Source: Macrostomum lignano
Taxonomy: Eukaryota
Direction: 5' to 3'
NCBI GenBank assembly: GCA_002269645.1
Contig: NIVC01003792.1
Coordinates: 12,593-76,592, forward strand
Length of the DNA stretch: 64,000 nucleotides
The stretch's first letter is position 1. Each line of letters starts with the position of its first letter. The notes beneath the pieces were generated by a model. The model was not told the DNA's origin. It ran no database searches and saw only the letters and a list, made by a program, of their open reading frames with translations. A program made the position numbers and the translations under genes. Positions 16,501-61,275 of this stretch are shown here, one piece after another.

Positions 16501-16853
16501 CTTTTACAGACAGCATTCAGCTTTGCGGATGCTGGGGCAGATTACTAAGCAGAGATCTAGACCGAGATTTAAAACTCTTGCAGTGTATGCTCTTCGATTT
16601 TACTGCCACTATTAGGCTTGGGCAAAAAAAAAACTTGAATAGTGTAAAATTGAATAGTTAGGCAACATTTCAGAGTCTAATTTCTTCATCAGTAGTTAGT
16701 GTTTTTTAATACTGTATAATGTCGTGCAGTTCAACAAATCAAATCTGGCCCTCTTTCTTTGGCCTAGCCAATCAACAAAAACATTTGCGGATGATATTAC
16801 AGTCAGAATCTTAATCTTCCGGCTATGCATTGATTCTGCCGCTGCCAATGATG

Positions 16854-17206
16854 GTACATTCTGCTTAGACCCACCCCACTCCCTGATTGTACATTCTGCT
16901 TAAACCCACCCACTCCCTGATTGTACATTCTGCTTAAACCCACCCCACTCCCTGATTGTACATCCTGCTTAAACCCATCCCACTCCCTGATTGTACATCC
17001 TGCTTAAACCCACCCCACTCCCTGATTGTACATCCTGCTTAAACCCACCCCACTCCCTGATTGTACATCCTGCTTAAACCCACCCCACTCCCTGATTGTA
17101 CATCCTGCTTAAACCCACCCCACTCCCTGATTGTACATCCTGCTTAAACCCACCTCACTCCCTGATTGTAAATCCTGCTTAAAGCCACCTCACTTCCTAA
17201 TTGTAC
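16854..17206. repeat. Tandem repeat, 35-bp unit TGTACATCCTGCTTAAACCCACCCCACTCCCTGAT, ~10 copies
   Basis: Period of 35 measured (16981 vs 17016). No unique spacers. Lies just 3' of the Phactr stop. Confidence 0.95.
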
Positions 17207-28167: not shown

Positions 28168-28746
28168 TCACAGGACCTCGCAGTGAAAAGCTGGTTTTAT
28201 TGGCTTTTTTGGAACCAACACAGCACGAATAGCCTCGTCAAACACGCTCTTCAGCCCTTTCTGAGTCAGGGCTGAACACTCAAGGTACTTCGCAGCGTTA
28301 ATCTCCTTGGCCATTGTCATACCCTGCAGGTGGGTGATGGGGGCCAGCTTCTTTGCTTTTAGCTCTTTAATTGTCTCCTTGTCGTCGCGCAGGTCCATTT
28401 TTGTGCCAACCAGCACGATTGGAGCGTTTGGACAGTGATGGCTCACCTCCGGGTACCACTTGGATCGAACGTTCTCAAAGCTTGTCGGACTGACGAGGGA
28501 AAAGCAGATGATAAACACGTCAGTCTCGGGGTAACTGAGCGGTCGGAGTCGGTCGTAGTCCTCCTGGCCGGCTGTGTCCCACAGGCCCAGGTTAATAGGC
28601 CGGTCATTGGCCACCACGACGGCTGAGTAGTGATCGAACACTGTCGGCACATAGGTGCTGGGAAAGGCGTTCTCAACGTAAGAGATGAGCAGACAGGTCT
28701 TGCCAACTGTTCCGTCGCCAACAAAGACGCACTTTACCGACTGCAT
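28168..28746 (-). CDS. rac: Rac-like Rho GTPase (192 aa, intronless), CAAX = CEVL
   Basis: [52 protein letters not shown]. The true ATG is at 28746; the ORF-track extension to 28824 is a tandem-repeat artefact. Confidence 0.95.
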
Positions 28747-28752
28747 TCTTAG

Positions 28753-28792
28753 GATACTGTGAGATACTGTGAGATACTGTGAGATACTGTGA
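28753..28792 (-). repeat. Four perfect 10-bp units just 5' of the Rac ATG (forward GATACTGTGA; TATCTCACAG-periodic on the minus strand)
   Basis: GATACTGTGA x4 directly visible. Confidence 0.95.
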
Positions 28793-29816
28793 GAATGAAA
28801 TTTCCGAAATTCTGTCTCTCGCAAGCCGTGTCAGCGTCACGCGTTTTATAATATTTGTGGCTTTCGAAATCGCTTATTTTTAGACTATGCCTCACTCAAA
28901 CGATAGAGAAATAACACAGTAAGCTCGTACCTTCTCTGCCCAGTCGCCCTCTCCTCTTCATGCCCTCTCTTATTTTTCATGCTTGCTACAAGCTATTAAT
29001 AGTCAGCTACTGCGTAATTAGTAAGCATGCAAATTCTTTCCATAGCATCCTTGGATATGGAAGTGACAGAAACATTGCCACCTACACGAATCTCAACTGC
29101 TGCACCGGAAAGCAAATAATTAGTTGAATTTGGGGTTCAACTTTTTCTTAGATTCAATGTATCGATTCAATCTAGCAAATTGAAACTGAAAAACAACTTT
29201 ACGGTTTCTTAATGGTACGAATTGATTAGAAACGCTGTGACACCCTGCCATGCATATTAAAATGTTTAGAAATACAGAAAAATCTGTCTATTCTCAAGCA
29301 CATTCATTCGCTAAGGAGGGCAAGGCAAGCAGCATGCATCAACCTTCCCTCTCGAAAGGGTGAAGCTGCATAAACTCTCCACTTGGCCAGCGCTCGCAAC
29401 CTTCTACTCATTTCAGAGCCCGATGCGATGCCCAGAGCAAAAGAGACGATGCCTTTGATGCCATCATCGCCTTCTCTTCTCTGCTGGTATGACTGACTAG
29501 CACGCAGCCTGAAAAAAATTGCAGTGTGCACAGAGCGTGCTTTTGTGCGCGCGCCCCACCCCAACGCCCCCTTGCCTAGCAGTTATCCCGACCCGCAAGT
29601 TTTGTCTGTGCAGACTAGCAATAGTCAGATCTATTTTTGCCAAGTCTACACAGAAACTGGAACTCAGCTATCTATCTACTTGTTTCTTTCATTCCTTTTT
29701 GCATATCGAAGCCTATCTCAGACATAAAAGAAAATTCTTACCAGGCGCAGAAATAGAATTTAGTTAGAAGATACGCTGTAAGCCAGCTCCTCTCTGTTTT
29801 AGACCTTCTGAGCGCG

Positions 29817-30404
29817 ATGCAGGCCATCAAGTGTGTTGTGGTTGGAGATGGAGCTGTTGGAAAAACCTGCCTCCTCATCTCCTACACGACCAACGCCTTT
29901 CCTAACGAGTACATCCCGACCGTGTTCGATAACTACTCGGCGAATATCATGGTGGACAGCAAGCCCATCAACCTGGGCCTGTGGGACACGGCTGGCCAGG
30001 AGGACTATGACCGGCTGAGGCCGCTGAGCTACCCGCAAACTGACGTGTTTCTGGTCTGCTTCTCCCTCATCAGCCCGGCCAGCTATGAGAACGTGCGGGC
30101 CAAGTGGTACCCGGAGGTGAGACACCACTGTCCCAGCGCTCCGGTCGTGCTGGTCGGCACCAAACTGGACCTGCGCGACGATCCAGAAACGATTGAAAAG
30201 CTAAAGGAAAAGAACCAGGCCCCCATCACCCACCTGCAAGGCATGTCGATGGCTAAGGAGATCGGTGCGGAGAAGTACCTGGAATGCTCAGCCCTGACTC
30301 AGAAGGGACTGAAGAACGTGTTCGACGAGTCAATTCGAGCCGTGCTGCGGCCTCCCAAGCCCACACAGAGAGGACGAATTGGTGGGAAATGCAAAATTTT
30401 GTAG
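29817..30404 (+). CDS. rac: Rac1-like GTPase (195 aa, intronless), CAAX = CKIL
   Basis: [60 protein letters not shown]. Confidence 0.97.
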
Positions 30405-31289
30405 TCAAAGCAGATTTTGGCTTTGACTTCACACACCGAGTTGCACGAAATTATATTCAAGATCAGCGCAGTTTTCTATAAGTAATAATAAATACTGCTT
30501 CTAACCTCAGTTTGTTTATGCAAATTAATTCGCGGATCTAAATCAATGCTTTCTAGACGATATTTTTAAGAAGAAGCAACATTAAAGGATGTTAGTTTCG
30601 GAGAACAAAGTTTTGCTCCCTTTCTCGCTTCCAAACAGAAGATTAATCTAAGATGAAAAATGTTTGATACTGCATGTTAATTTTCATATTTTATCCAGTC
30701 TTTGTTGTTTTAATCAAGTGGGCCCAAGCTGATCGAAAAAATTTTCTATTTTTGTTGGCTCAAACATACAGATATTTCAGCTGCGTACGGCTTTAATGCT
30801 GCCTTTTATCCTAGAAATAATATTCTATATGTTTATGCTGCATTATGCAAATTTATGGTCGACATTAAGAGGCCTAGCCTCTATTTCTATTCTCTAGAAG
30901 ACCACAGAAATTGAAGCCAAAATATAGCGGTGTAGAATCTAACAATATGTACAGACTTTTTCTTCATCGTTTAAAAAACGACATTGTAAACAATGTTCAA
31001 AAATGCTATAAATTGATTTTCTACTGTTCTAAAAAGTTATTTTATGGCTATTTTTACTCTTAATTTTTTAGTGCACCCGCTGTGTTTGTATAATATTTAC
31101 TTAGTTTTCTGAAAAATATTGTTCAAACAAATCAATTCAATTTTTATGGTGAATCATTTTAATCATCAAGGAATTTTCGACAATAAACAATATAAACTAC
31201 CTACGTGTATAAATTCTTCGATCTTTTAAGTTTGTTTATCATCCTTAGACAACAATATTTGTCTTTAGACTTCTCTTGAGTTTCAAATT

Positions 31290-31870
31290 TCTGGGCCTGC
31301 AAACGTCGGGTAGAACCGAGTTCGTCCCGAGGTGAGTGATCGAGCCTGGCCCTGTTGGAAAACCGGGCAGTGGCAGATAAAGTGCTCAGCGTTTTCACTG
31401 TCTGAGCGACAAAAGGGGTATCGCTCCTCCGGTACCTGGCCCTGAGATGGCGAGGGTAGCAGCCATGCCCGGAGAGGGCTATGCTAACCGCTCCCTGCTC
31501 CCTGCTAAAAGATCCCTGCGGTTGAGCCGAAGAAGGGTCTATATGCATTAAGGGGAGGGGCAGGGGCGGCAGCATGGGATTGCCTGCAGTTCCGAGTGTC
31601 GTGCCATCTGGGGAGACGCTCGGAGTCAGCCCAGCGACTAACTCGGTCAGAGATTGGGGCACCTGGGCCCCGCCGGCGGAGCAAACCTTGGCCAGCAGGT
31701 CAGCGCACTTGTTGCCGAGGAAACCAGCGTGGCCCGGAATCCATTCGAGCTCCGCCCAGCTGGGTGTTGCAGTCCAGGATAGATTTGTAGCTGGCGGTGC
31801 TACGTACGGCAGAGAGCCCGAAGGGCTGCCTGGCTGTCGGAGTGAACAGACACTCAGAAAAGACTTCGGT
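31290..31870 (-). mobile_element. Degenerate 3' fragment (RNase H / C-terminal region) of a non-LTR retrotransposon related to the 37.5-43 kb element
   Basis: WIPGHAGFLGNKCADLLAK and ALSGHGCY mirror [19 protein letters not shown] and ALSGHGCF of the large element. Frameshifted; boundaries approximate. Confidence 0.8.
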
Positions 31871-32549
31871 TCAGGCACATGCTTGCTACTGAAACATTAA
31901 GTATATGACGTCTTAGTCGAACAAGGACCAGTGCATGCATACAATTATGCTTCAACAAGATTAACCAATGACAAAAATAGGAAATTAGACAACTTTTGGC
32001 CTTCAACTTGGATAATTGTGCCGTACAAGCTCCAATTTTAGTTAGCAATAGAAAAAATAGCACAAAAACAGAACGATAATTAAATTTCAGTTATATCGCG
32101 CGTGTGCATCAGTGCTGCGTGCTTTGATTTGCAAAGTAAGAGATTCATGCATCTTCCTTATCATGGATATGCTTAAACTTAAATGAATACCACGAAGGCC
32201 AGAATAGAACTAGGCTGTCTCCGAAAATATCTGTCAACGAGCAGCAGCTCGATCCACAACCGCTGCACACCAAGACTAGAGCAGCTATCTTAAACGTTGA
32301 CGATTAATTCATAATTCTAAAGGCTTAAAAAGGCATAGCCATACAGCGAACTGCTTATAAACTACCGGCAGTGAAATTTGGCGCGTGCGAGGCACCAAGA
32401 AAGCCAGCCAGGCTTATCTAAACACATAAATAAGGAATCACTGTATCTTCCGTCGTGCATGAATTTCAGGGTAGGCAATTTCACAGAAAGTCATAAGCAG
32501 CCATTTCAGTAGTTCAGCTCAGCTTACCTACTGAAAGATTTGACTGAAC

Positions 32550-33131
32550 ATGCAAACGATCAAGTGCGTTGTGGTTGGCGATGGAGCAGTCGGAAAAACA
32601 TGTCTGCTCATCTCCTATACTACCAACGCGTTTCCTAACGAGTACATCCCGACCGTGTTCGACAATTACTCCGCCAATGTGATGGTGGACGGCAAGCCCA
32701 TCAACCTGGGCCTGTGGGACACGGCTGGCCAGGAGGACTATGACCGGCTGAGGCCGCTGAGCTACCCTCAAACCAACGTGTTCCTTGTCTGCTTCTCCCT
32801 CATCAGCCCAACTAGTTACGAAAATGTTCGATCGAAGTGGTACCCGGAGGTAAGTCACCACTGTCCCAACACTCCGATCGTGCTGGTCGGCACCAAACTG
32901 GACCTGCGAGACGATCCAGAAACTGTTGAAAAGTTGAAGGCCAGGTATCTGGCCCCCATCACGCACCTGCAAGGAATGACAATGGCAAAGGAAATCAACG
33001 CAGTGAAGTACCTGGAGTGCTCAGCTCTGACTCAGAAGGGGCTGAAGACTGTGTTCGATGAAGCTATACAAGCTGTAATGTGCCCGAAGCCGAAGAGCAG
33101 CAAGAAGGGACTCAGCTGCAAACTGCTTTAG
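32550..33131 (+). CDS. rac: Rac1-like GTPase (193 aa, intronless), CAAX = CKLL
   Basis: [42 protein letters not shown]. Confidence 0.97.
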
Positions 33132-37499: not shown

Positions 37500-43030
<5,531 letters not shown>

Positions 43031-45242: not shown

Positions 45243-48138
45243 TCAGCCTGAGGGCACAAGCTTTCGCAAGCGCCGCTGACTTGAATCGGGCGGACGTCCA
45301 TCAGCCTGTGACTCGCGTCGCACCAATCCTTTAAAGAAGGTATTTGCTAGACGCCTAGATACGTGGGTCAATTGCCCCGACTGCAGCTGGACATCCATGA
45401 ACGCATCGAAAACAATTAAAAAGACAGACCGGAAGTAGTTGACGCAACGAGGTGTTGCAGCGTTGAAGTAAGCGTAGCATAGGCAAGCAAATACCACCAG
45501 CCACTCAGGAGGGTGACACAGCTTCCCTCGTGAAAGAAGCGAAGTGAATTCACTGCTACAGGCTGGTTCGTAAACCGTAGCAGCCTGACAGTCGAGCTTT
45601 TCCTTAAAGGCCACGTAGCCACTGATAAAATATAGCGCTGCATTCTCCGCGTCAGAAATGTTGTCGGACAGTTGTGGGAGATTGTCAACAATTTTCCAGT
45701 CTCCCTGCGAAATTTCAGCAGAGCAACAGGCCAACGGTTGATGGTCGTCACAGACTAACTCCAATTTACTGTAAAGTTGCATTCGGCGTAGCCGCGCACT
45801 GGCCAAAATTTGATCAACGGATATATAATAACACCCGCCGTGGCCTTGCCGATAAATAGAAAACTCCCCCTCAAGCCGGTCAGTCTGCAGCTCACCTAAA
45901 AATTTTTGAAGTTAGTGCCTGGGTATGCAGGTCATATTTATTGAGTGTCAATTTATTATGGCAATAACAATACCAAAAAATTCCCGTAATGTTACGGGAA
46001 ACAGGGAGTAGTGAATAATACTACGTACCGAGCAACACGTACGAAAACCCTACTTTCATCAGCAAATGTCTAGACAAATCAGCCAGGCCGTTCGCAGTCT
46101 GATGGATAGCCTTGCGTGTCTCAGTAGTCAGCGATCGAGGGCGGCTAGCACCCCTACCACCTGGCATGCGATCAACGACAGCTGCAAAACTGAGCAGCTC
46201 CTGAATTGCACTTGAGTTGGTGCTGCTAATTGGGGCTCGCCGAATGTCATTCAGACGAATGTGGGACTCTGGTGACTTTACGTTTACAACTGTCCAAAAG
46301 TTGAGAACGCGCTCGACGAAGTCGGCAGTCTCAGAATAGCCATTCAGCTGTAATGCTGCAACTGTTTTCTCGTGGAATACATCAAGCACCAGCGAAACTT
46401 TCTGTCTCTCAAGAGGAGAGGGGCGGCACGCGACTGGATTAAGACGTGTCGTCCGTACAATATGATTTCGAGAAGCTTCCTCAAGCCTGGTGATTTCGTT
46501 CCACTTAGCCCGCTTGACTGGCTCTCCAATCACTGGCTGAAAGTCGATCTCACAAAAAGACTGCGTCAGCCAGTTGTTCCGGATGTTCTTCATCAAGTGT
46601 ACTGGGTCGTACAGCAGGAACAGCGGCTGATCGGGATCAGCTGGATTCTTCGCCAACCAGGGAACAGCAGAATCCCCTTGCAACAGTTGGAAGCAGTTGC
46701 GATTGGTGAAGTGGTTGTCACAAATTAGACTGACAACTGTGCCCCCTAGCTGATGTATTAGTTGGACGAGATGCACTACTTGGTCGTACAGGAAGGCTGG
46801 TTGCAAGCTGTAAATGGGTATCAGCCGTGCAACATAAGCGGGACCGCCCATGAACGACTTTACCATCAGCGCCAAAACAGTACGAGCAATTTGACGGGGA
46901 GCATCCTCTGAATACCCAATGGTATGACAGCCACTGAATCGTAGCGACGGCTTGACATACACTTCATCGAATAGAATGATGCAGTACCGCTGCAATGGGC
47001 TACAGTTTTCAAGATGTGACTGCACAATCGACTGGCAGTCACTGTCTGACCCAACACTGCCAAGACCACCAATGTGCCGCTTGAGTGTAGATGGGTGAGG
47101 CAAACAGGTGTACTCTCTCAAAGTTTTATAAGCTCCTCTCCCGGCAAAATAGAACCTGGCTGCAGTCATGATGTCCTCAGAAGTGTATCGGATTCCGTTG
47201 GGATTAAGCGAACTTAGTTTTAGCTGTCTGAGAAGAAACAACTGCTGAGGACTGTAGCTGGTTGAACCAGTAGTAGCTTGCAACGCCTGCAAATGGCTAT
47301 CCAATTCAGCAGACTGAGTAAACTCGGCATGCCTCACCCTATTCAAAACTGCCTCCAACTGGCTGAACCGCTCCATTCGGTGTTGAAAGCCAAGCAGATC
47401 AGAAATGCTGACAGGGGTATTGCGTCGGTGTGCTTCAGCTGCAAAGTTGCTTCTGATGGTAATAGACACCTCGACTGTTCGTTCAGTTACAATCATCAAG
47501 TTCACTCGATCTGACTTTTGCTGCACAAGCCAGTTGTCAGTAACAACACAGGCTAGTTTGGGAACCTGCTCAGTAAAAGTCTGCCATGAACTGATGCGGT
47601 CCTGAGCATTGAATTCTTCTAATTCATCTGGAATAGCAGCTCGCTCGCTCAGAAGCACACAACGTTGAGAAACCTCCCTGGATGATCCTAAATATAAATT
47701 ATGGTTAGTAACAATAGACCCACATCCAAAAGGATATTATTAATGAATAGCATAGCATAAGTCAGATGAATCAGATCTTACTTGGCACAGTTTGGCGTAC
47801 TGCACTGATAGGGACAGATGAAAAGATACTTGGAGGATCAACTGGTCGCAGAAAACGCTTTACTTTTATCATCCGAGCATTTTCAGGCCAGTGTTGGGCA
47901 CAAATCTTTTTTATTGTGGTCACCTATGAAATTTAAATGCACACTTGCTTGACCAAACTTAATAATAGTGCATAAGATAATATATATATTATAACAACAC
48001 ATGTACCTTAACTGAAGTGGGCAAAGCCATCATCCAGGCATCACAATCTGCTTTGTCCTTTGGAAAGCTATAAACAGCAACCTTTGGACCAGTCAAATAG
48101 TTGCCTTTGCAGTTGGGAATGCCGCACTTAAATGGCAT
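45243..48138 (-). mobile_element. THAP-domain P-element-superfamily transposase, 4 exons, apparently intact (~861 aa)
   Basis: Exons 48138-48007 (MPFKCGIPNC..YSFP..W), 47923-47782 (ICAQHW..RPVDPPSIF), 47687-46029 (ILFDEVY, LICDNH, YDPVHLMKNIRNNW) and 45895-45243 (QTDRLEGEFSIYRQGHGG). All junctions are GT-AG and in phase; total 2586 nt. TIRs not identified. Confidence 0.9.
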
Positions 48139-49358: not shown

Positions 49359-50127
49359 CTACTTTTCTGTGTTCGACTCAAACTCGGAAGCTAGTCCGGG
49401 GTCCAAGAAGCACTTCTTGGATAATCGTGTCAACGTCTCCGACACGACGAATAACCTGTTCCCATCTCTTAGTACTGGGTTTTTCTTGAGACGGTCGTTG
49501 GCAATAGTCAGCATGTCGAGCAGGTGCTCGGTCTTGTGCATCTCTTCAATCACATCGCACACTGTCTGCACGTATGGCGACCCTTCTGTAGGGTTTCTTA
49601 GAGAAGCCTGGCCGCTTGGAGTGGCGAAGCACAACACGAAATCGCTATCCCTCGGGCAGTAATATGCATTAGACACTTGCTGGTCCACCCATGCACCTGG
49701 AATGGTTTCGCAACCCTTTCCTCGGCATGCCTGAATGAAGAAGAGTTTCGGCTTGTTACACAGTCCGGTGCACTCGTTTCCTCGAAACCGTTTAGCGATG
49801 GCCTGGACCTCCCATGCTTCACCATCGATGCCGTAAATGGAGGATTCGTCACCATGAGCCATGATGAAGCATACGAAACAGCCATGGTTAGAAAGGTCCG
49901 GAGAGAGGGCTTTAAGACTTACGATTCGAACGAGTTCATTGCAAGTTAGATCTTCGTGAACCTCGACAATAAAATTTAAGCTGGTAAACAATCTCTTCAC
50001 TCTATCCACGTCTAATTCCGAGCCAATTCTTTCTTCAAATAGCGCGCGATTTCTATATTTTTTTATGTTGATGATCAGACAGAAGCCCTGAGGTGAGGTA
50101 ACTGGATAAATGGCCTCCTTGTTTCGT
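49359..50127 (-). CDS. Caspase catalytic domain exon (p20+p10), active-site residues intact
   Basis: IYPVTSPQGFCLIINIKKY, GSELDVDRV, CFIMAHG (His), KPKLFFIQACRG (Cys), DSDFVLCFAT, GSPYVQ, VSETLTRLSKKCFL. The frame is open upstream of the ORF-track GTG start to a phase-2 acceptor at 50128. Confidence 0.95.
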
Positions 50128-53100
50128 CTGGAATTGTTGAATTACGATTTTGTAGGTCGTAATGTAGCTTCGATATTATTTAAATGCAGTTATTTTAGTC
50201 AGTTCAAAGAGGGCCGTTGAGTACCCCTGCAAAATGAAGGCCTCAAAATAAAGAATCCTGAAGGTAAACAGCAATACCTATTCCTCTAACCCCTGAGCAC
50301 GCGAACGCACACGGATACGTACAAAGGCACACACTCACACAATGTAAGCAACCCTGACTTTCTTATCGTCAAACATGTACACACTCTGTACCTCGGAGAT
50401 TGTCAAGAATAATTTGATAAGCTTGATTTTCTCGCAAAAGCCCAAAGTCACTCGTAATTTGGCTTGGCACGAGAGTCAGACACCTTCCTGCTCACCTACT
50501 TTCACTCAATTCAGACACCATGCTTTGCTAACTGCCAAAATCCGAACATAAAAATTTTTTTTAGTCTAGCGCAAGAGTAAAAGAGTGCATGCACCCAGAG
50601 CTCACCTGTTCAGATCGTTTAACTTTTGTGTCGCAGCTTGGAACGAAACTCTAGGTTCCTGTGAAGGATAAACTTCAGTTTGTTCAGCGGGTCCAGTAGG
50701 TTCCTGTGAAGGATAAACTTCAGTTTGTTCAGCGGGTCCAGTAGGTTCCTGTGAAGGATAAACTTCAGTTTGTTCAGCGGGTCCAGTAGGTTCCTGTGAA
50801 GGATAAACTTCAGTTTGTTCAGCGGGTCCAGTAGGTTCCTGTGAAGGATAAACTTCAGCTTGTTCAGCGGGTCCAGTAGGTTCCTGTGAAGGATAAACTT
50901 CAGTTTGTTCAGCGGGTCCAGTAGGTTCCTGTGAAGGATAAACTTCTGTTTGTTCGATGACTCCTGACTGTGCCTCAGTACTGGAGTTTAATCGACGAAT
51001 ACCTCGCGGCTTTGGAATCGGATGCGGAGGCACAACCGGCGGCTGTGCTTTATGGGGCTTAAATAAACCCTCAGATTGGCCAGAACAAACGTCATATTCC
51101 ACGTCTCTATGGTCGTTGGAGTCGAAACTTTGAGCACTGTTTAAATGTGAGATTCGGTGATCATCTATTGCATGTATACTTTTTAATAGGATATTTCAAG
51201 TTAACTTACGAGGCAAATTCGTTACACTCGTCGAAATCACGGTGAGGCTCATCCAGCTGATCGTGAGGCTCTGAGGCTTCAGTTTTGCTGCTTTCCTTTT
51301 CTTGTATTGAGCCGACTTCCAGAATTTTTCTGTAAAAACAAGACGCAAAATCTAATGGTGGACAAAAGAACCCCCATCATCGTTGAAACTTTACCATAAT
51401 ACGAGCGTAGGAACAACAAAACGATAGTTTCAGCTGTTGCTGTTGCAAAGTTTTTTTGAGATAGATGCTTAAAAAATCTTACTTTTGTTTTTCGAAAGCC
51501 GCTCTTACGGCCGCCTTGAAAAGGCTATCTAGCCCCGATCTTCTCAGAGCCGAGCACTCAATGTACAATTCAGCGCCAATATCTTTGGCCAGAGCTGTCG
51601 CCTGCAAGCTGCTGATGGGAGCAAGCCGCTTTCTGTGCAGTTTCTCCATTTCAACTCTATCGTCGAGCGCATCCATCTTGGTCCCAACCAAAATTATTGG
51701 AGTGTTCGAGCAGTGAAGAGCTATCTCTGGAAGCCATCGGGTGCGCACGCTGTCAAAGGTAGCGGGACTGGCAATGGAGAAGCAGATGAGGACGACGTCT
51801 GTCCCTTCATAGTTTCCCGGCCGCATTCGGTCATAGTCTCTCGAGCCACTGTTATCCCACAGGCCAACGCGAATCGTATATCCATCTACCTGAACCTCTT
51901 TTGATAAGCAGTCGTCGGTCTCAGTAGGAACATACTCAACTGGGCAGAGTCCTTCAGCATAGGCCACGAGCAGACAGGTTTTGCCGACCTTCTCGTCACC
52001 AACGACATTGATTTTTAGTTTCAACGCAGGGACAACGGCAGCTATGTTTTTGTTCCGTTCCTCTTGCTCTGCTTTCATTTGAACCTGTCTCTTTTTTAAC
52101 GCTCTAAAACGATTCGATGTTTGTTGATTTTTAGATGAAAACTAGGATAAAATTATAACGCTTTTATCATTGATTTAGAAGTTTCATGCAAAAAATATGT
52201 ACCTGTCAGGTACTGGAGGCAGAAGCTGTGGTGGTGGCAGAGGTATGTCCTGGGCTTGTGGTAGAGGCCTTCAAAGGTGTAGAAATGTTTAAGTTATATA
52301 GTTGCGTTCAATTATCAGTTAACTGAAGTTGATTAATCGTGTAAAGCACTACAATTAGGTTGAATATTCTTCGATGAAGGCTCAATAATAGGCTTTATAA
52401 TTCAGAATTTACAATAAATTAGCAATAATCTATATAAGGTCGTTGGACTAATAGCTTAGCTCGTACAGAGAAATTGCAACAAAAATAAGCCAATTGTCAA
52501 AGCTTGGTCTTATCCCAGAGGTTGTCAAACTCCGGCCCTCAAAGCCTCTCTTTCCGCCCCTCCAGTCCTTTGAAACTTCACAATCGCAATCCCATCCGCT
52601 CTCTTCTCAGCTCTCTTTTCATTTTCTCTTCTCCTTTCTCATTTCCCCTCTCCCCTCTATCCTCTCTCCCATCCTCTCCTTTCTTTACTTCCTTCTCTTA
52701 TCTCCCCTCTCCACTCTTTACTCATTCTCCTCTCCGGTCTCGTAAGGGATCTTTGGTCTCACAGTCCTTATTGTTTCGCGGGCCAGTTTTTGGTTTGCAA
52801 ATCTAAACTGTGACAGTTGAAATTGTGACTAAACTGTTTATTAAACTTGTGCACTACACACGCTCGTATTAACTATCTAAGGTGCTCTGTGGAGGGAATT
52901 TCAAGGAAGAGCATTGCAAATATATCCAGAAAGACACACTAAGAGAATCTTTCATGCCTACCTCTGACCAAGGTCGTCAGTCTTGAACGGTCTTTGTTGA
53001 ATTGTGTCTTGTTTGTTAGATTCCGATGGCTCATCATCAATAAAGTCGTACACATATTCTTCCTCGGTAGCCTCCATGTTGTAGCAGCTTGCATAAGTCC

Positions 53101-56100
53101 TGCAAATAATCGTTTTAGTGCTTTTATCACGTCGGTTTGATGGTTTGAGTAAAGACCCCAGATACTAAAACTGGGGTCAACTAGTGGGTGACTTCAAAGC
53201 ACAGGGAGATACTGGGCTAACGCACCTGTTTGCTGACTGGCGGCGCGCCTGTCTCCTGTCCTTCTCTCACCCTCCGCAGCCCCTGCTTGGACTCAACCGC
53301 AGGGATATCAGGGCGGTGACAATCCCTCTCGGGCCGTGACTGTTTTGCCAGACATCGCTACCTCCTGGGAAAAATCCGCAGTGAGAGGTATGCCCGTTCT
53401 GCCTCTACGTAAGTCATGTAATTAGTCAAGCTAGCTCGTATTTGTACATTTTAAGAATTTCGGGGTCGCATTCGCCAGTTTGAAATTTCACATCCTGGAA
53501 AAGTCTTATCTGTTACTTTTTTGAAGAGTGAAACTTCACAAGCTCAAATTTTCATATCGCGAAGTTATTTTAAATTTTGGATTGCGGGAGTGACTAGCAC
53601 GGGTTTTCAAAGTTGTGAAATTTCTTGTGAAGCGCCCCTATTATGTTTTATTGCGAGTAGTCAAATGTAGCTCGTAAAATAAAATTTCTTTTTCTCACGG
53701 ATTTGTTGCCTGAACATCCGCCTTCATGTAGCCATGCCGGTTGTATAAATCTATAGACGGACACGTATAGATGTCTGGATCGGCGCCTCCAGTTGCTCCG
53801 GCCAAAGGATAATCAAAATCTCTAGAAATATTTCATTTGAAGAAAACGAATTTTATGTTTAATAACAGGAAGAGTAAAAAACAATTTCTGTTAAGGATCC
53901 AGCCAGACATTTTTGCTACAGTGAAAATTCACAAGGATGGCTAGATTTTTCTCGCACATGGTCAAAGAAGATTCATGTCACTAGCCTTCGAAATCGTCCG
54001 AGATTTCAATGACATTCAATAATAATGATATTCAACAATGATATTCAAAGATATTCAATGATTTTGCCAGAAGGTCCGGATTTTTTCCCTCAGAATGCAT
54101 TCAGTGCACCCCCTAGGCAGAAATTACGAGCAAGCGCTGCAACTCAGTGCGGCCTTGCCAAGCCTTCAAATTTCGTTATTGTCTCTGACTTTAACGGCCT
54201 TCTTCTAGGCGAAACTTCCGGACATTCAGCAGGCATTGGGTGCGAGACTACGTAGGCACCCTATTTCGACATTTTTCAAGCACCGTAACTGATGGGGGAT
54301 CCTCAACTAGGGAAGACCGACTTTTTTTAGAAATAACGAAGAACGCTCATATTTGCAGGAGGGCTGTGGGCACCCTGACGCATCGCTTTGTGTGACGTGG
54401 GAATGTGATGTGCGAAATCGTCCCACAACCCGGCGCTGAGGCAATTCTGATTCCGCTGACTCCTGAACTCATTCTGTACGCAAATTTGTAAAGCGGCCCT
54501 TTGACTTTCTAATTGCCAGGCATGTGCAACTCTCCGTGCCTTGGAGGGGGGGTTGCCCGCAATTTGACTTTCTAATTGCCAAGCATGTGCAACTCTCCGT
54601 GCCTTGGAGGGGGGGGTTGCCCGCAATTTGACTTTCTAATTGCCAGGCATGTGCAACTCTCCGTGCCTTGGAGGGGGGGGTTGCCCGCTCTCCGTGCCTT
54701 GGAGGGGGGGTTGCCCGCAATTTGACTTTCTAATTGCCAGTGCATGTGCAACTCTCCGTGCCTTGGAGGGGGGGGGTTGCCCGCAATTTGACTTTCTAAT
54801 TGCCAGGCATGTGTACTCTCTGTGCTATAGGGGGGGGGGGTTGCCCGCAATTTGACTTTCTAATTGTCAGGCATGTGCACTCTCTGTGCTATAGGGTGGG
54901 GGGGGGGTTGCCCACAAGGGTGTGAAAAGCACGACGAGAATTTACGAGTGCAAGCGCCAAGTTGATGTGGGTGTTCATTTAATCAAATGAGGTACCAGAG
55001 GGAGGTCGCATCGCGAGAGTCAGACGCGTTTTCCGGTGACTCTGTTCCGCCTTTTTTGAACTCCACTTTGGTAAATTTGCTTTTAAACTCTTTTAATCAA
55101 TGGAAAACTACTACTGGCTATTGATAGGTATAAGTCTGTAAATAAATACCGCAGTTGCGGCGCCTCTCATATGAGTGATGGAAAGTAAACGGGAGCTTAA
55201 ATTTTTTTCAGATTTTTTTAAGCAGAGCAGAACAGCATTGTTTTGTCAGCGCACCCAACTGGAGCTTTTGAGTACATGTAGTATGCTAGTAGTATACTGA
55301 GCAAACTTAAACAAGTTGTCGAGATTGAACACCAAAAAATTTTAAGCTTACGGTTCGATTCCTTGATCACGTGTCGCCGCTCGAATCGGATCGGGTTGTA
55401 GATACTCACATTCATCAGTTTTTTGGGCACTATTGAGGAAATATGATTATTTTTTCACGGTTAATTTTTTCTAAGAAAATGATTTTAATTTACTGTTTTG
55501 TTTGCGACAGATAAAGAGAGTATTGACTGTTCGCGCTTTTGCGTTGCTCTTCCTATCATTTTCGTGAAGGTCATCAGTGCAATTTACTGATGAACTTGAG
55601 ACACCAATGACTAAAGGATGCTACAATGGCAAATTGTGAAATCTGCACAGAGAATATTGTCACGCAGTATCAGATAAGATATGGTCGATACTCTCTGAAT
55701 CAAAGACGCAATCAAATGATTCGAGACCAAGAACATCTCGTACACGTAGCCATTCTAATATAAAAGATACCTGTACTCGTTCGAACTCTTAGTTCTTCTC
55801 CAAAAGATGGCTTTTGACGGGAGAATACTTAGTGCCCTGCTGCAATAAAGTTTAAAGGAAACGAATATTAGGAGAGCGTAGTAAAATATTCAGCGTAAGG
55901 CATATCAGACGAAAAGTAATAAAAAGTAAAATGAACACGTACCTTTTGTTTGTTTTTGACAAAGTCTGATTGTACTTCGTGAAAATAATCTCTTCAAAAA
56001 CTTCCCGGACACTCTCAGGATTCAGAGCGGAGCACTCTTTGTAAGTCTCAGCGTTGATAATTTTTCGCAGATCACGGCCTTCGAACTGACTAATCGATGT

Positions 56101-56475
56101 CGAACTGTCTCGCAGGTCCCGCTTGGTTCCAACCAGAATAAAGGACGCCTTGTGGAAGAGCTTTCTGCACCTTTTAAACCATTTTCTTCTCACGTTTTCA
56201 TAGCTCGCTCGGCAATCGATGGCAAAGCAGAGAAGCACAACATTCGCCTTTGGGTAACTCGGCATGTCGACAAAGCATTCGTCCTTACTGGGCGAGTCCC
56301 ACAGTGTGATCTGAAATGTGTGTCCCTCTAAAGTGCTCTCCATGCTGTGTTTCTTAAAGCAGTCAGTGGGGATGTGCATGCGCTGGAATTCTATGCCTAA
56401 TTGGCAGTCAATCAGGCAGGACTTGCCAACCGCTTCGTCGCCGATGGCGAGGCAATTGATCTTGTTTGAACTCAT
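49359..56475 (-). CDS. Predicted tandem Rho-like GTPase - Rho-like GTPase - caspase fusion protein (~925 aa, 7 exons)
   Basis: Exons 56475-55943, 53099-52962, 52268-52203, 52103-51483, 51329-51210, 51136-50606 and 50127-49359. All six introns are GT-AG and phase 2. The exons are open in one frame and sum to 2778 nt. The link across the 2.8-kb intron (55942-53100) is the least certain. Confidence 0.8.
50653..50955 (-). repeat. Coding tandem repeat, 45 bp / 15 aa (EQTEVYPSQEPTGPA), ~6.7 copies, in exon 51136-50606
   Basis: Near-perfect copies visible; unit length is a multiple of 3 and the frame is open. The exon has a TTTAAACAG acceptor and a GTGAGC donor. Confidence 0.95.
51483..52103 (-). 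CDS. Atypical Rho/Rac domain exon (GTPase 1 of the fusion)
   Basis: GDEKVGKT (G12E), YVPTETDD, WDNSGSR (Q61S), TKMD, ECSA; no CAAX. It ends CAA AA|GTAAG, so the ORF-track stop lies inside a donor site. Confidence 0.9.
53183..53406 (+). mobile_element. Degenerate internal fragment of the same LINE family as 37.5-43 kb, lying in an intron
   Basis: Aligns by eye to ~42460-42685 (CTTCAAAGCACAGGGAGA, CTGCTTGGACTCAACCGCAGGGA, GGAAAAATCCGCAGTGAG). Confidence 0.85.
54500..54917. repeat. Tandem repeat, ~63-bp unit (TTTGACTTTCTAATTGCCAGGCATGTGCAACTCTCCGTGCCTTGGAG(G)nTTGCCCGCAA), ~6-7 copies
   Basis: Period of 63 (54500 vs 54563); one internally deleted unit; G-runs lengthen toward the right. Confidence 0.93.
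55943..56475 (-). CDS. Highly divergent Rho-like domain exon (GTPase 2)
   Basis: GDEAVGKS, HIPTDCF, WDSPSKD (G60S, Q61K), TKRD, ECSA. Phase-2 donor AG|GTACGT at 55942; strong acceptor TTTTTTAG at 56527, 51 nt upstream of the ATG. Confidence 0.85.
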
Positions 56476-58165: not shown

Positions 58166-60555
58166 CTACCCGTGATGATTTTTGCTTTCTGTTTTTCTCA
58201 CGGAAGCCAATACCGCCTGTCTAAAGATGTCTTCCACAGCTGTTCTACACAGAGCGGAGCACTCTAGATACACTTCAGCACCGATCTCTTTAGCCAACTG
58301 CTCGCCCTGAGTCACGCTGATTGGAACGAGATTCCTTTCCTCCAGCTTGTCGATGGTCTCTGGGTCATCGCGCAGATCGGAATTCGTTCCGACCAGGATA
58401 AATGGCTTTTCAGGACAATGACGGCTCACTTCCGGGTACCACTTGGCCCGTACATTCTCGAAACTAGCAGAATTGATGAGGGAGAAGCAGATGATAAACA
58501 CATCTGATTGGCGATACCGCAGAGGCCTTAAGCGGTCAAAGGACTCCGCACAGCTCACGTCCCACAAGCGGAGACACAGTTGGCTTCCAGCCAGTGAACC
58601 CTCCACGGCAAAGCAGTCGTCGGTCTCTGTGGGAACATACTCCTGAGGACACTGGTCCTCTGCGAATGCGGTCAGCAGACTGGTCTTGCCAACCGCTTCA
58701 TCTCCAACTATGACGACTTTTAATGTTATTGTGTCACTCTTCGTCTTTGATTCGGCGGTTCGAAACACGACAATAGTTTCCGGATAATCAACTCGAGAAC
58801 TAGGCTCTCTGAGGTTTTCCGAGACTGGCTCTCGCTGAGCACTGGCGGACTCCGTGTCCGAGCTTTCGTCGTCACTTTCTGTTTCGGATGTCGGCTGCTC
58901 GTCTTCGCTGAGCTCGGGACTCACGGCTTCTTGTGTACTGCAAGACATTGTTAAGAGGGAAGATTACGCATTCCCGTAGACAGATAACTGTGTCTGCAAT
59001 CCTTCATAGCTTGAGTTCCAGTTAGAAAAAGCTTACCTCGAAGCAGGCTGTTGGGGCTGATCCAAAACTTCAGCGGATGAAGTGTCCGCTGGCTCGCAAG
59101 TTTCACTCGAAGCTTTGGTTTTCTTATCGTGCGACTTCTGTTGTCTAAAAAATATGAGCATATGGGATACATTTTCCACTGCTCTGGTTTTGGCAAGGAA
59201 TGCTATTATTCTGAATAATTTCAAATTTAAGAAACAGTCGTACGATGCGATATTGTACGAGTATGTTTTCCCAGGGCGTAAACCGCGGAAAAAGGCTTTA
59301 ATCGATGATGGAGATCTGCAAGTTTTTTTAAATAAGCTCGTGCAAAAAACTCGTATTAGTGGCTAATTAAAAAGAATTCTAACAGAATTTTAAAACAAAA
59401 ATTACTCCAGAAGAGGAGCTAGAGTATTTACTTAATGCTCGGCTCATCAGGTGAAGTTTCGGTCTCGGAATCTTTGGTTCCACCATCGGAAAGAACACTT
59501 TGCCTGCAAGGGTTCATTGGAAATCTTGTTGCAAAATATTTTAATGAATATATTTCAGGAATAAAGTGTGCTCCAGCAAATTACTTGATAGACGTTTCAG
59601 AGTTCCTTCTCGACGACGATAGCGAATGAAGGAACGAAACGACTTTCTTGGAATCTCTGAAATTATTGCAAGTTGTTAAGTAGTGTGTGGCGATCTTGTT
59701 TTTGAAAGCGTTCTCGCTCACGCATTTTGATAGCTCGTGCATTTTAAATCTGTGAAAAAACTCGAGAAGTACCCAAGCCAGAATCTAAAGAGCTTTGATT
59801 ATTTTTCAAAGCTCTTTGCTGATAACTTTCACTTCTGTTGGCCCTTTATAAAAGATTCTTGATACACATGTACAACATTTTTAACCTACAAGTGAACTCA
59901 AACAGTGGCTGAAACTATCTTTACGCACCCGTGGTGTTCATTTTTCTTCTTTTTGCCATTGCGAGCGTCAGAAGAGTTAAGAACTAAGCGAGCGGCCTCT
60001 TCGAACACTTCTTTTAATCCTTGCTGAGTAATTGAGGAGCATTCCATGTACTTTGCCGCATTGATTTCCTTGACGAATTCGTTGGCTTGCTCAGCTGTAA
60101 GGTTTTTCTCAGCATCTTCTTCCTTGGTCTCGCTTATTTTCAAACCTGTTCGCATGTCAAGCTTTGTTCCAACCAAAATAATGCGTGCTGAGGGGCAGTG
60201 GTGGCTCAACTCCGGGTACCACTTTGTACGCACATTGCCAAGCACAAGTTCGGCTGACTTGGTCAAGTCAAGGCAGATGATAAACACGTCTGTCTGCGGA
60301 TAGGCGACTGGTCTGAGAGTGTCGTAGCCTTCACTGCCTCCCGTGTCTGTCAGCGCCAGTTCGATAGACTCCGATTCCATGGGCAGCCGAGCTGAGTACG
60401 TTTTGTAAATTGTTGGAATAAACGTGTCTGGCATTGAGCCATTTACGTAGGTCTCAATCATGCAGGTCTTGCCAGCGGTAGAGTCGCCAACAATAACACA
60501 TTTGATCATTCTCATGATTGCTGCTATCAAACTTCCGACAAGTTTTTTTGCAGAG
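58166..60555 (-). CDS. Multi-exon unit encoding two further atypical Rho domains (GTPase 4 - Ser/Glu-rich linker - GTPase 3), ~536 aa if it starts at ATG 60515 and ends at 58166
   Basis: Exons 60555-59929 (GDSTAGKT, FIPT, DTGGSE, TKLD), 59656-59585, 59503-59432, 59144-59037 and 58937-58170 (GDEAVGKT, YVPTETDD, WDVSCAE, TNSD). All junctions are GT-AG, phase 2 and in frame. The 3' end is unresolved (stop at 58166, or donor GTAGAT). Confidence 0.8.
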
Positions 60556-60912
60556 CTGGGTTAACTGCCAAGTCGAAGGAGGCACTAAATAACGTTCTAC
60601 ATCGTTATTTCTCATCCGTGATGTTTCGGGTGTACATATTTGGATAGAAAGGGCCGGAGTTATATTTAGCTCTTACAAAACAGAAGACAGCACAATTCCG
60701 CGATTCTGATAGCACCGTGTACGTCTAGACGGGTAAGCAGGCGAACTACAAAAAAGGCAGAAGAATGAAAAGAGGGCCTCTGAGTTTTCACTGCATTGGG
60801 CGAAGTAGAGAAGTAGACAAAATAGTATCTGTACATCCATCAAGGCCAGCAGGTAAATGTTTGTGTGCTTGAAATTTCTATTTATGTTTAAGAATAAAAG
60901 AGGCCCAGAAAA

Positions 60913-60917
<5 letters not shown>

Positions 60918-60976
<59 letters not shown>
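60918..60976. repeat. (AG)n / (AGAGAC)n microsatellite
   Basis: Directly visible. Confidence 0.97.
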
Positions 60977-61275
60977 TTCAAGTCCCCCCTATGTTTTACA
61001 GAATTATGTATCAAAGAAAATATACTGCAAGTTACTACTCGTACGAGTAGCATACTAAGTGAGCAAGTCTACAACCGTCACGAAGAATGTCGAGTAGTTT
61101 TCTGAAAAAAAACTTTCCGAGGAAAAACTAAAAATTAAACATTTTAATTAAGAGCACCATTAGAATTAAAACTCTTGACCCATTGCTTCGGAGTTGAATT
61201 ACATGAGTCTGCTTTTATTAATTAAGTCTGCTTTTAAACTTAATAGAGTCGAGTCACTGGAGACTGCCATCAAGA

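Follow-up and report, generated by a model that had tools for sequence, protein, structure and literature searches.

A predicted Macrostomum lignano gene that may join two Rac-derived GTPase domains in one protein

On the minus strand of Macrostomum lignano contig NIVC01003792.1, five GT..AG-bounded exons splice into a 1611-nt open reading frame encoding 536 amino acids with two Rac-like domains, here termed D1 and D2. The gene model, in which D1 is connected to D2 through a linker, is plausible from its sequence, and the chances that both domains belong to one gene with one tandem-Rho mRNA are judged to be about even; the points against it are the non-coding score of exon 2, the departure of three of the four donors from the consensus, the lack of a GenBank gene and the presence of rival in-frame ATGs. 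The locus is part of a Rho gene cluster in a window of 64,000 nt (the whole stretch of DNA that was analysed), which contains three canonical intronless Racs, four divergent CAAX-less Rho domains and one caspase. All coordinates are those of the window; adding 12592 gives the record coordinate on the contig, where the D1-D2 locus occupies 70758-73107.

An earlier note on this DNA had described five exons separated by phase-2 introns, including small exons of 72, 72 and 108 nt open in phase 2-2, and all of these elements were confirmed at their minus-strand positions. Exon 1 (60515..59929, 587 nt) encodes D1 as residues 1-196, beginning with an ATG at the ancestral Met position and ending ..KKKKNEHHG at the phase-2 donor GG/GTGCGT (the slash marks the splice boundary). 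This donor, which opens putative intron 1 (59928..59657, 272 nt, GC 0.364), sits exactly where canonical Racs have the Cys codon of their CAAX box, and reading through it yields CVKIVSATV followed by TGA at 59900..59898. Exon 2 (59656..59585, 72 nt, encoding DSKKVVSFLHSLSSSRRNSETSIK) is open in frame between the boundaries TTTCAG/A and A/GTAATT; intron 2 (59584..59504) leads to exon 3 (59503..59432, 72 nt, encoding QSVLSDGGTKDSETETSPDEPSIK), and intron 3 (59431..59145) to exon 4 (59144..59037, 108 nt, encoding QQKSHDKKTKASSETCEPADTSSAEVLDQPQQPAS), whose donor is the consensus GAG/GTAAGC. Beyond intron 4 (59036..58938), exon 5 (58937..58166, 772 nt including the TAG stop at 58168..58166) is entered in phase 2 at the acceptor TTGCAG/T and encodes a 71-aa acidic, Ser/Thr-rich, Met-less extension, then D2, which ends ..KNHHG before the stop.

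All four introns are bounded by GT..AG, have YAG acceptors and are in phase 2, and the uniformity of phase previously remarked upon extends to every junction that can be drawn in the D1-D2 gene and its paralogue; at a phase-2 boundary, read-through of a consensus GTRA donor always gives TAA or TGA. The predicted product measures 512-536 aa, without or with the frame-neutral exon 2, and contains an acidic linker of ~155 aa. A single gene predicts the junction peptides ..NEHHGDSKK.. or ..NEHHGQSVLSDGGTK.., and a stand-alone D1 predicts the C-terminus ..HHGCVKIVSATV. The proposal that exon skipping would change the number of GTPase domains does not apply to this gene, in which D1 comes first, D2 comes last and skipping of the 72-, 72- or 108-nt exons alters only the length of the linker; a frame-preserving exon that contains a whole G domain does occur in the neighbouring paralogue (621 nt, phase 2-2).

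The gap between D1 and D2 contains ~10 open symmetric AG..GT segments, hence the mere existence of such exons is not significant. Exons 3 and 4 are nevertheless the only candidates in the 1-kb gap, scanned in all phases, which pass a combined splice-site and codon-usage filter whose thresholds were chosen after the data were seen. Among 1000 Markov-simulated gaps, 4 yielded at least two such exons, and just one segment passed in 9.9 kb of control non-coding sequence. The codon usage of both exons stands out from that of stop-free non-coding windows (p=0.04 for exon 3 and p=0.016 for exon 4), their lengths are multiples of 3, and they read open in the single phase by which D1 and D2 can be linked. 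Exons 3 and 4 thus exceed chance moderately. The N-terminal extension of D2 has a strong coding score, reached by no null window, and GC content is 0.43-0.53 in the exons and 0.32-0.41 in the putative introns. Exon 2, by comparison, scores as non-coding and does not exceed chance (codon log-likelihood ratio -7.3; -2.3 under an earlier background, p=0.31 against stop-free non-coding windows); of the five exons it is the least well supported, and it may be used only alternatively or not be an exon at all.

Three of the four donors (GTGCG, GTAAT and GTAAA) depart from GT[G/A]AG, the species motif found in ~65% of M. lignano donor regions (PMC8629364), and one matches it. Donor quality was tried as a discriminator and dropped, since its estimated likelihood ratio for real against random sites is ~1. 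No significant similarity was detected between the linker exons of the D1-D2 gene and those of the paralogue (p>0.2); the resemblance of exon 4 to the exon following the second paralogous domain (p=0.03) was lost under multiple testing, and a tblastn search with the linker gave no match.

Pfam assigns two Ras-family domains to the 536-aa protein (E=3.5e-73), and Rac1 is the best solved-structure match in phmmer of both D1 (E=4e-57, over the whole domain) and D2 (E=4e-59). Each is 48-52% identical to Rac1, and they are 35% identical to each other. In alignment, D1 retains GKT, T35, DTGG, TKLD and ECS, with the substitutions G12S and Q61S and no CAAX; D2 retains G1, T35 and G5, with G12E and Q61A, and its G3 and G4 motifs are degraded, DTAG having become DVSC (G60C) and TKLD having become TNSD (K116N). 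The catalytic Gly12 and Gln61 are replaced in both. Alignment with Rac1, Cdc42 and RhoA places the Rho insert helix between G4 and G5 in each domain, diverged in D1 and reading DDPETIDKLEERNL in D2, and both thus combine a Ras-fold G domain with the insert that characterizes the Rho family. As judged from these sequences, D1 and D2 are of Rac ancestry. Despite ~50% divergence from Rac, their open reading frames are intact and G motifs are kept, a point in favour of long-term selection.

A CAAX prenylation box is absent from the protein: the CVKI relic beyond the D1 donor is not C-terminal, and D2 stops after ..HHG, so that the chain ends in the hydrophilic sequence ..RKTESKNHHG. Pfam detected no BTB domain at E<=0.01 and no EF hand or TM segment; it found no COR domain either, and its Roc matches are overlapped by stronger Ras matches, which sets the protein apart from ROCO (Roc-COR) proteins. 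A single-sequence AlphaFold2 prediction of the 536-aa protein was uninformative (mean pLDDT 35).

Each GTPase domain occupies one exon and lies near the three intronless canonical Racs. All three carry a CAAX box and are called in GenBank, at 28746..28168 on the minus strand and at 29817..30404 and 32550..33131 on the plus strand, the plus-strand calls being of 195 and 193 aa. The minus-strand call covers 649 nt for 212 aa, which is not what a simple single-exon model would give; in all three genes, which together span 28168..33131, the G domain lies within one open reading frame. The three are probably the source family. The homeologous contig NIVC01003617.1 stops 7.9 kb beyond Rac B, far short of the D1-D2 locus.

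The remaining two divergent domains, D1' and D2', lie next door on the same strand. D1' (55943..56475) begins with an ATG of its own at the ancestral position, preceded by an in-frame TGA 15 nt upstream and a T-rich TAG acceptor ~50 nt upstream. It lacks a CAAX, and its domain ends without a stop at a phase-2 donor AG/GTACGT, beyond which lie 103 nt of T-rich, intron-like sequence. Its Rho insert is deleted. D2' (51483..52103) is the 621-nt exon of phase 2-2, with the acceptor TTTTAG/A and the donor AA/GTAAGA; it shares the switch-I variant YVPTETDDC with D2, and its junctions in and out are also used by database model P0269. In a neighbour-joining tree the four domains form a clade of their own beside Rac/Cdc42, with no orthology to Rnd, RhoH or RhoBTB, and group as ((D1,D1'),(D2,D2')), a topology consistent with duplication of a D1+D2 unit. 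The exon shuffling proposed in the earlier note is only partly borne out, and its capture of intronless Rac-like sequences as whole-domain exons is a conjecture.

Both pairs exhibit the same twofold asymmetry: in D1 and D1' the ancestral Met is still there and a GT, not a stop, occupies the position of the CAAX box; D2 and D2' have lost this Met, and an open extension and an acceptor lie upstream. Such an asymmetry, seen in the sequences of both pairs, is expected of a two-domain gene. The 3' ends of the D1 and D2 exons also share AAAAAT(GAA)CAYCACGG/GT, a stretch whose nucleotide conservation equals that of the core motifs DVFIIC and KWYPE, where the overall figure is 48%. The common CAY CAC GG/GT ending (..HHG) was previously described as lying at a phase-2 GT in both exons. 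The sequence is indeed present in each, yet after D2 the GT is merely the G preceding the TAG stop, a trivial coincidence, as a stop following any G creates one.

The linker exons through which D1 and D2 were proposed to be joined are open and in frame, and against the junction stand the weakness of exon 2, the off-motif GTGCGT donor and in-frame ATGs that could start a D2-only cistron. A possible, though somewhat unlikely, alternative is that D1 and D2 are separate cistrons, possibly in an operon, with D1 a 205-aa CAAX-less Rho stopping at 59898 and D2 its own gene, maybe SL trans-spliced. The off-consensus D1 donor fits this organization, and so does an acceptor-like U-rich CAG, TTTTTTCACAG (59740..59750, minus strand), which lies 148 nt past the D1 read-through stop and 7 nt before an in-frame ATG at 59742..59740; the extension opened by this ATG continues through the exon-2 donor into exons 3, 4 and D2, and has a codon log-likelihood ratio of +4.9. 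The 148-nt gap is in keeping with operon spacing in M. lignano, which has a mode of ~100 bp, in a species where 15% of genes are in operons and 30% are trans-spliced (PMC8629364). Further candidate starts are an ATG a few codons ahead of exon 3 (MNPCR before the junction), one at 59161 (MLIFFR before exon 4) and, 11 nt ahead of the acceptor of exon 5, one at 58948..58950 on the minus strand (MSCS..). An AUG supplied by a spliced leader could not start exons 2-5, since phase 0 runs into stops.

Separate cistrons leave unexplained the conserved 3' ends of D1 and D2, and they conflict with the missing stop of D1 and missing Met of D2, a pattern that recurs in the neighbouring pair. Between D1 and the candidate starts there is ATTAAA, at 59545 and 59302, but no AATAAA, and the simple single-ORF products are likewise missing from the protein collection: exact look-ups found only two canonical Racs there, and neither D1', D2', the 536-aa model, the read-through ORF of D1 nor the ORF from MSCS through D2. 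It also counts in favour of two cistrons that 'double-Rac' entries elsewhere are mostly predictor fusions of tandem genes, with a CAAX stranded in the chain; models from Ostrea, Mytilus and Mercenaria (P0001-P0005) have internal CAAX boxes or truncated domains at the join. At the present locus these signs of artefact are absent, as there is no functional CAAX or stop before the D1 donor and D2 has no start Met.

Whether the locus is expressed at all also has to be considered. Its domains might be silent or decaying relics of tandem duplication whose 'exons' are chance features, which is regarded as quite unlikely. The transcriptome-derived GenBank annotation of NIVC01003792.1, which holds the Rac genes, has no protein at least 90% identical to linker plus D2 or to the caspase, the G3 motifs of D2 and D1' are badly degraded, and the model from another assembly discussed below has a frameshifted stretch in D1. 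That frameshift, located in a CCCC run, could stem from an assembly error, however, and decay is at odds with intact reading frames of 196 and 257 codons that retain G1, G4 and G5 after such divergence, with the coding signal of the D2 extension and with the score of exons 3 and 4 above null expectation.

Word-index homologue searches with the full protein, linker plus D2 and the caspase returned no near-identical protein, their matches being apparently limited in length relative to the query (inferred from the returned ranges). An exhaustive search did recover UniProt A0A1I8GCE2, an automated 1207-aa 'CASPASE_P10 domain-containing protein' that corresponds to the D1-D2 locus, with identical junctions from exon 1 to 3, 4 and 5. 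It skips exon 2, has the frameshifted stretch in D1, includes an 'intron' of 22 nt, and runs four G domains and part of the caspase together; its exon e4' is only 85% identical, which points to another assembly or copy. It is a poor model, and shows only that the predictor saw identical signals. The one very long gene which it implies, D1-D2-D1'-D2'-caspase with the double-Rho protein as its N-terminal part, agrees with the window at every residue of D2, D1', D2', exons 3-4 and D1 outside the frameshifted stretch, and has phase-compatible boundaries throughout, yet is most improbable, given the in-frame TAG that ends D2 (whose last 11 residues the model must drop), the phase-0 splice into the 5' leader of D1', a 1.7-kb gap from D2 to D1' without any exon-quality segment, the start, TGA and acceptor of D1' itself, and the loss of the catalytic part of the caspase alongside the 22-nt intron.

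The paralogous pair raises a separate question, as D2' is followed on the minus strand by a Ser/Glu-rich exon (51329..51210), an exon of 6.8 repeats of 15 aa (51136..50606) and an exon with a complete caspase domain (50127..49359, Peptidase_C14 E=9e-45), all entered in phase 2. The first two lack an in-frame Met, as does the caspase exon ahead of 'FIMAHGD'. The idea that the caspase is necessarily translated from the D2' exon was weakened by two ATG-first mini-exons with phase-2 GTGAG donors, at 50521 and 50376 in the intron preceding the caspase exon (~0.8 expected by chance on a rough estimate), from which a stand-alone caspase may be predicted to start. CARD or DED is the usual caspase prodomain, and cFLIP and CARD-only proteins act as caspase decoys or regulators. 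The two genes could encode paired proteins, a D1'-D2'-linker-repeats-caspase chain of ~974 aa in which GTP-locked or pseudo-GTPase Rho domains replace the CARD/DED prodomain for recruitment and activation, and a caspase-less D1-D2 protein acting as decoy or regulator in the manner of cFLIP or CARD-only proteins, with phase-2 boundaries permitting truncated or domain-number variants by intron retention or exon skipping; this scheme is considered doubtful. No Ras-domain neighbours of caspase homologues were found in other assemblies, and no combination of Ras and caspase occurs among the matches listed with Pfam domains for the caspase and Rho homologues. Literature searches gave nothing specific on Rho-caspase or M. 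lignano caspase architectures; the couplings described in the papers examined involve ROC/AP-GTPase and STAND NTPase, not Rho.

Should the single tandem-Rho gene be real, it would be a lineage-specific atypical Rho gene whose mRNA joins two Rac-derived G domains into a cytosolic protein of 512-536 aa, in the order D1 (first coding exon), two or three small Ser/Glu/Thr-rich linker exons and D2 (last exon). With GKT, T35, DxxG and TKLD kept and G12S and Q61S substituted, D1 would be expected to bind GTP and hydrolyse it poorly, and by analogy with Rnd, RhoH or RhoBTB could be constitutively 'on'. D2 is probably a weak binder or pseudo-GTPase serving as an interaction module, as its motifs suggest. 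Lacking prenylation, the protein would have no membrane anchor, and its control may be exerted through expression and phosphorylation of the acidic linker, where exon 2 contributes an RRNS site and S/T-x-x-D/E sites are numerous, and possibly through the inclusion or skipping of frame-neutral linker exons. As to its origin, an intronless Rac tandem array would have diverged, and the D1+D2 unit would then have been duplicated to give D1'+D2' next door. In the first-position domains a splice donor would have replaced the CAAX Cys codon, and in the second-position domains the initiator Met would have been lost to an upstream extension of the reading frame entered via an acceptor.

A real mRNA would thus represent a tandem of two Rac-derived domains, one GTP-locked and one degenerate, without a lipid anchor, an architecture so far uncharacterised among Rho GTPases. 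Such an mRNA would furthermore illustrate cleanly how a domain becomes internal, with its start codon lost and a donor replacing the CAAX cysteine codon, and together with the neighbouring gene it offers the testable possibility of Rho domains as a caspase prodomain. Two cistrons, on the other hand, would mean that atypical Rho genes have expanded in this lineage in an ordinary way, within a genome rich in operons, and would be a warning about fused gene models.

Compared to known systems, the locus is closest to the Rac subfamily, represented by human Rac1 and the three Racs of the window, with which it shares full-length Rac-like G domains with a Rho insert, each in one exon. It differs from them in having no CAAX, in the replacement of G12 and Q61, in the loss from D2 of the DxxG glycine and the G4 lysine, and perhaps in carrying two domains per chain. 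In the D1-D2 protein, as in Rnd1-3, RhoH and RhoBTB, substitutions at Gly12/Gln61 predict constitutive GTP binding and GAP insensitivity, and regulation would then be exerted through expression or phosphorylation instead of GEF/GAP cycling. Rnd and RhoH are single-domain, prenylated proteins, and RhoBTB adds BTB domains, whereas Pfam gives only two Ras-family domains here. Miro likewise has two GTPase domains per polypeptide, of which the second is diverged, yet it carries two EF-hand pairs between them and a C-terminal membrane anchor, and its C-terminal GTPase is not Rho-like and has no Rho insert (PMC7600811). In the D1-D2 protein, both domains are Rac-derived, the linker is disordered and acidic, and EF hands and TM segments are lacking.

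Literature searches gave nothing specific on tandem-Rho proteins, and the claim that they are rare holds in that they are uncommon; they are not unique, as the locus is already fused in UniProt and uninterrupted ORFs with 3-4 Rho-like domains exist. The ORFs of eukaryotic ENA contigs P0006 (four domains), P0011 (three) and P0270 (TM plus three) have tandem CAAX-less Rho-like domains, and P0270 has Ser/Pro/Glu-rich linkers, as in the D1-D2 protein. They are not orthologues of it (27-43% identity), and differ in their abutting domains with short linkers and in having no introns. P0006 and P0011 are uninterrupted ORFs, and tandem-Rho proteins are thus real in at least one organism.

The minus strand was read from 61000 to 57800 and spliced, which bore out the exons, introns and open reading frame that an earlier note had drawn for a gene with two Rac-like GTPase domains, D1 and D2. 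Exon 1 (60515..59929, 587 nt) begins with ATG and carries D1; it is followed by exon 2 (59656..59585, 72 nt), exon 3 (59503..59432, 72 nt), exon 4 (59144..59037, 108 nt) and exon 5 (58937..58166, 772 nt, TAG stop included), which carries D2. All four introns are GT..AG and in phase 2, and the spliced frame of 1611 nt encodes 536 aa, in which Pfam recognizes the Ras family twice, as D1 (residues 1-196) and D2 (about 350-530), the two being 35% identical. The whole-domain GTPase exons and uniform phase 2 had been correctly observed in the note. Its statement that both GTPase exons end at a phase-2 GT holds for the sites themselves, since CAY CAC GG/GT (..HHG) closes both D1 and D2, but the GT of D2 is a by-product of the stop codon, involving the G that precedes TAG. 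Read through past its GT, D1 continues as CVKIVSATV and then meets TGA. A (CT)n microsatellite lies upstream of D1, at about 60900-60990.

Open symmetric AG..GT segments are frequent, with about 10 in the 1-kb D1-D2 gap. Candidates were filtered on a combination of donor and acceptor scores and the log-likelihood of codon usage, with thresholds picked after the data had been seen, a codon table trained on the confident domains and the TTL gene, and a background taken from non-coding stretches that neither gene model covers. In this gap, exons 3 and 4 alone passed, and with every phase and length permitted they were still its sole physical candidates; their lengths are multiples of 3, and they are open in the one phase linking D1 to D2. 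Of 1000 first-order Markov simulations, 4 yielded at least two passing exons, and a 9.9-kb control sequence gave one only. Against stop-free non-coding windows from an earlier background, p was 0.016 for exon 4, 0.04 for exon 3 and 0.31 for exon 2, and no null window reached the score of the D2 N-terminal extension. GC content alternates between 0.43-0.53 in exons and 0.32-0.41 in introns. Given the filter result, the null comparisons and this alternation, exons 3 and 4 are probably real coding exons joined to D2; exon 2 is doubtful as a coding exon.

The D1-D2 locus is already in UniProt, in fused form. An exhaustive HMMER search recovered UniRef100_A0A1I8GCE2 (P0269; 1207 aa, E=0), a M. lignano 'CASPASE_P10 domain-containing protein' whose residues are those of the window across D2, across D1' and D2' (the matching domains of a neighbouring paralogous gene), and across D1 except for one stretch. 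Its junctions are exactly those of exons 1, 3, 4 and 5, with exon 2 left out, and beyond D2 it continues via D1', D2' and a repeat exon to the C-terminus of the caspase. The model is automated and of low quality: D1 has a frameshifted stretch at a CCCC run, the repeat exon is interrupted by a 22-nt 'intron', and the catalytic half of the caspase is missing. One exon is only 85% identical to the window, so that the model derives from a different assembly or copy. The same signals were thus recognised by a gene predictor independently of the earlier note, the mRNA being still putative.

On these sequence signals, the proposal that D1 and D2 are joined in one mRNA is evenly poised. In its favour, D1 and D1' keep the ancestral initiator Met, aligned with M1 of Rac1, and both have a phase-2 GT, not a stop, at the position of the CAAX Cys codon of canonical Racs; D2 and D2' are without this Met, and open extensions entered via acceptors precede both. 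The asymmetry between first and second domains, seen twice, also counts for one gene, as does the AAAAAT(GAA)CAYCACGG/GT common to the 3' ends of D1 and D2, tails whose conservation equals that of the DVFIIC and KWYPE cores, at an overall nucleotide identity of 48%. A neighbour-joining tree gives ((D1,D1'),(D2,D2')) beside Rac/Cdc42, which fits duplication of a two-domain unit, with D1/D1' long-branch attraction possible. The one-gene reading is disfavoured by the donors: GT[G/A]AG, the cis donor motif of M. lignano, present in ~65% of donor regions (PMC8629364), is found in intron 4 only, introns 1-3 having GTGCG, GTAAT and GTAAA. It is also disfavoured by the linker exons, which show no significant similarity between the D1-D2 gene and its paralogue, and by in-frame ATGs upstream of every one of exons 2-5; that at 59742, 7 nt past a TTTTTTCACAG acceptor and 148 nt past the D1 read-through stop, opens an ORF extension with a codon score of +4.9. 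D1 and D2 may thus be two cistrons, a reading that we hold only tentatively. Also in favour of one gene, the M. lignano spliced leader has an AUG at its end (PMC8629364), which would impose phase 0 and stops at each acceptor, so that the leader is unable to start D2. Where a donor has the consensus GTRA, read-through of a phase-2 boundary always runs into TAA or TGA; every exon end here thus also serves as a clean stop, and the one-gene and several-gene readings are hard to tell apart from sequence alone. It is improbable that the two domains are silent relics, and membership in a giant gene of the UniProt type is very improbable.

The neighbouring gene has two divergent, CAAX-less Rho domains on the minus strand, D1' (56475..55943) and D2' (52103..51483), between which an analogous chain can be drawn via four small exons, one alone (e4') being common to the UniProt model. 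Within the 3.9-kb gap between them, 54500-54917 is taken up by a satellite-like tandem array (64-nt unit) that has poly-G/C runs, probably repeats inserted into an intron or between genes. The D2' exon (621 nt, phase 2-2) has the donor AA/GTAAGA, and past it come two further phase-2 introns, whose donors, GTAAG and GTGAG, are perfect. The exons 3' of D2' are a Ser/Glu-rich exon, an exon of 6.8 45-nt repeats and a caspase exon, the last reachable from D2' across three phase-2 introns, each with a consensus donor; joined to D1' and D2', they make up a 974-aa ORF. The 45-nt repeat (50652-50955, 98% identity, within a coding-like exon) encodes TEVYPSQEPTGPAEQ x7 and has no stop in two or more reading frames, the frame of the UniProt model differing from that used here. 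The caspase domain, in the minus-strand region 49359-52103, is complete at 50127..49359 (Peptidase_C14, QACRG and HG intact). The caspase exon has no in-frame Met ahead of FIMAHGD, and the two exons that precede it have none at all, which suggests a D1'-D2'-caspase fusion. A stand-alone short-prodomain caspase could instead start from either of two mini-exons in the preceding intron that open with ATG and have a phase-2 GTGAG donor, at ATG 50521 (good Kozak context) and ATG 50376; caspase homologues of other assemblies are stand-alone, and no Ras-domain neighbours of them were found there. Just downstream, a 545-aa ORF (46021-47658, minus strand) matches the RNase H N-terminal domain of TNP-like (P-element/THAP9-type) transposases (E=4.6e-9) and is probably a transposon remnant.

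The window is the final 64 kb of NIVC01003792.1 (GCA_002269645.1), record positions being window positions plus 12592. Its Rho cluster comprises three Rac genes with CAAX at 28-33 kb, the G domain of each in a single open reading frame, and, on the minus strand, the four divergent domains D1, D2, D1' and D2'. By exact look-up, one canonical Rac ORF clusters with M. lignano PAA50517.1 (BOX15_Mlig003766g1). The third Rac-like gene (28168-28816, minus strand; L001 5619-6267) has a GenBank model of 212 aa over 649 nt, at odds with the 192 aa that a plain single-exon ORF gives from MQSVKC, and a tiny intron or alternative start may lie inside it. The GenBank record annotates the Racs as well as a TTL gene, with none from 33 to 43 kb, and GC is 0.57-0.61 at 38000-42000 against about 0.45 elsewhere. 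No protein at least 90% identical to linker plus D2 or to the caspase was found in the 90%-clustered database, the simple single ORFs of the locus have no exact match in the protein collection, and we conclude that the half of the contig carrying D1-D2 and the caspase is without annotation in the protein database. The Logan assemblies are not a listed source even for the canonical Racs, so that absence there is uninformative on expression. Tandem arrays occupy 1825-3267 (52 nt x 27), 8487-8880 (perfect 16 nt x 25), 12551-13372 (7/15-nt ATATGGG, the cause of a GC-skew spike at 12-14 kb) and 16849-17206 (35 nt x 10).

Both D1 and D2 have Rac1 as best structure match over the full length, Rho insert included (E=4e-57 for D1, 4e-59 for D2). 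In the alignment, the P-loop is GDSTAGKT in D1 (G12S) and GDEAVGKT in D2 (G12E); T35 of Switch I is retained in both, with a 1-aa insertion right after it in D2; G3 is DTGGSE (Q61S) and DVSCAE (G60C and Q61A), G4 is TKLD, as retained in D1, and TNSD (K116N), G5 is ECSS and ECSA, and a CAAX box is absent from both. Rnd, RhoH and RhoBTB bind GTP but hydrolyse it poorly, and D1 should behave likewise; D2 probably binds weakly or is a pseudo-GTPase. The linker, about 155 aa long and rich in Ser and Thr, is acidic and has RRNS in exon 2 and numerous CK2-type sites. If D1 and D2 are joined in one mRNA, the protein could serve as a cytosolic tandem-Rho scaffold, constitutively 'on' and controlled via its abundance, linker phosphorylation and optional linker exons. 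Single-sequence structure prediction of the 536 aa was uninformative (mean pLDDT 35).

The whole-domain exons in uniform phase 2 had been taken as captured Rac-like sequences and as a substrate for exon shuffling or skipping that would change the number of GTPase domains, an interpretation that finds partial support. The skipping part does not hold for the D1-D2 gene, where loss of the symmetric exons leaves the number fixed; such a change would be possible only in the neighbouring gene, through its D2' exon. Capture by exon shuffling is conjectural, and the observations are consistent with local tandem duplication and divergence, a donor replacing the CAAX box. Together with the origin of the D2 GT in a stop codon, these points weaken the exon-shuffling interpretation.

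By predicted fold, motifs and insert, the D1-D2 protein is a Rho-family member, yet it departs from classical Rho proteins in the absence of a CAAX box and in its catalytic residues, from RhoBTB in the absence of a BTB domain, from Miro in the absence of EF hands and TM and in its Rac-like second domain, and from ROCO in the absence of COR. In many 'double-Rac' database entries, gene prediction has fused tandem genes and left CAAX boxes at internal positions. Uninterrupted ORFs with four and with three Rho-like domains are found in the ENA sample ERZ25067590, and a further multi-Rho ORF (P0270) encodes a protein with TM and triple Rho. The former include a eukaryotic contig with a cluster of Rho-like ORFs (L003; ctg30500, locus 1909-11196), in which four tandem domains occupy one 2223-nt ORF and two overlapping Ras-domain ORFs lie upstream. 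Tandem Rho domains in one chain, described as rare in the earlier note, are thus uncommon but not unique, and D1-D2 would be a variant of this known architecture only if its mRNA is real.
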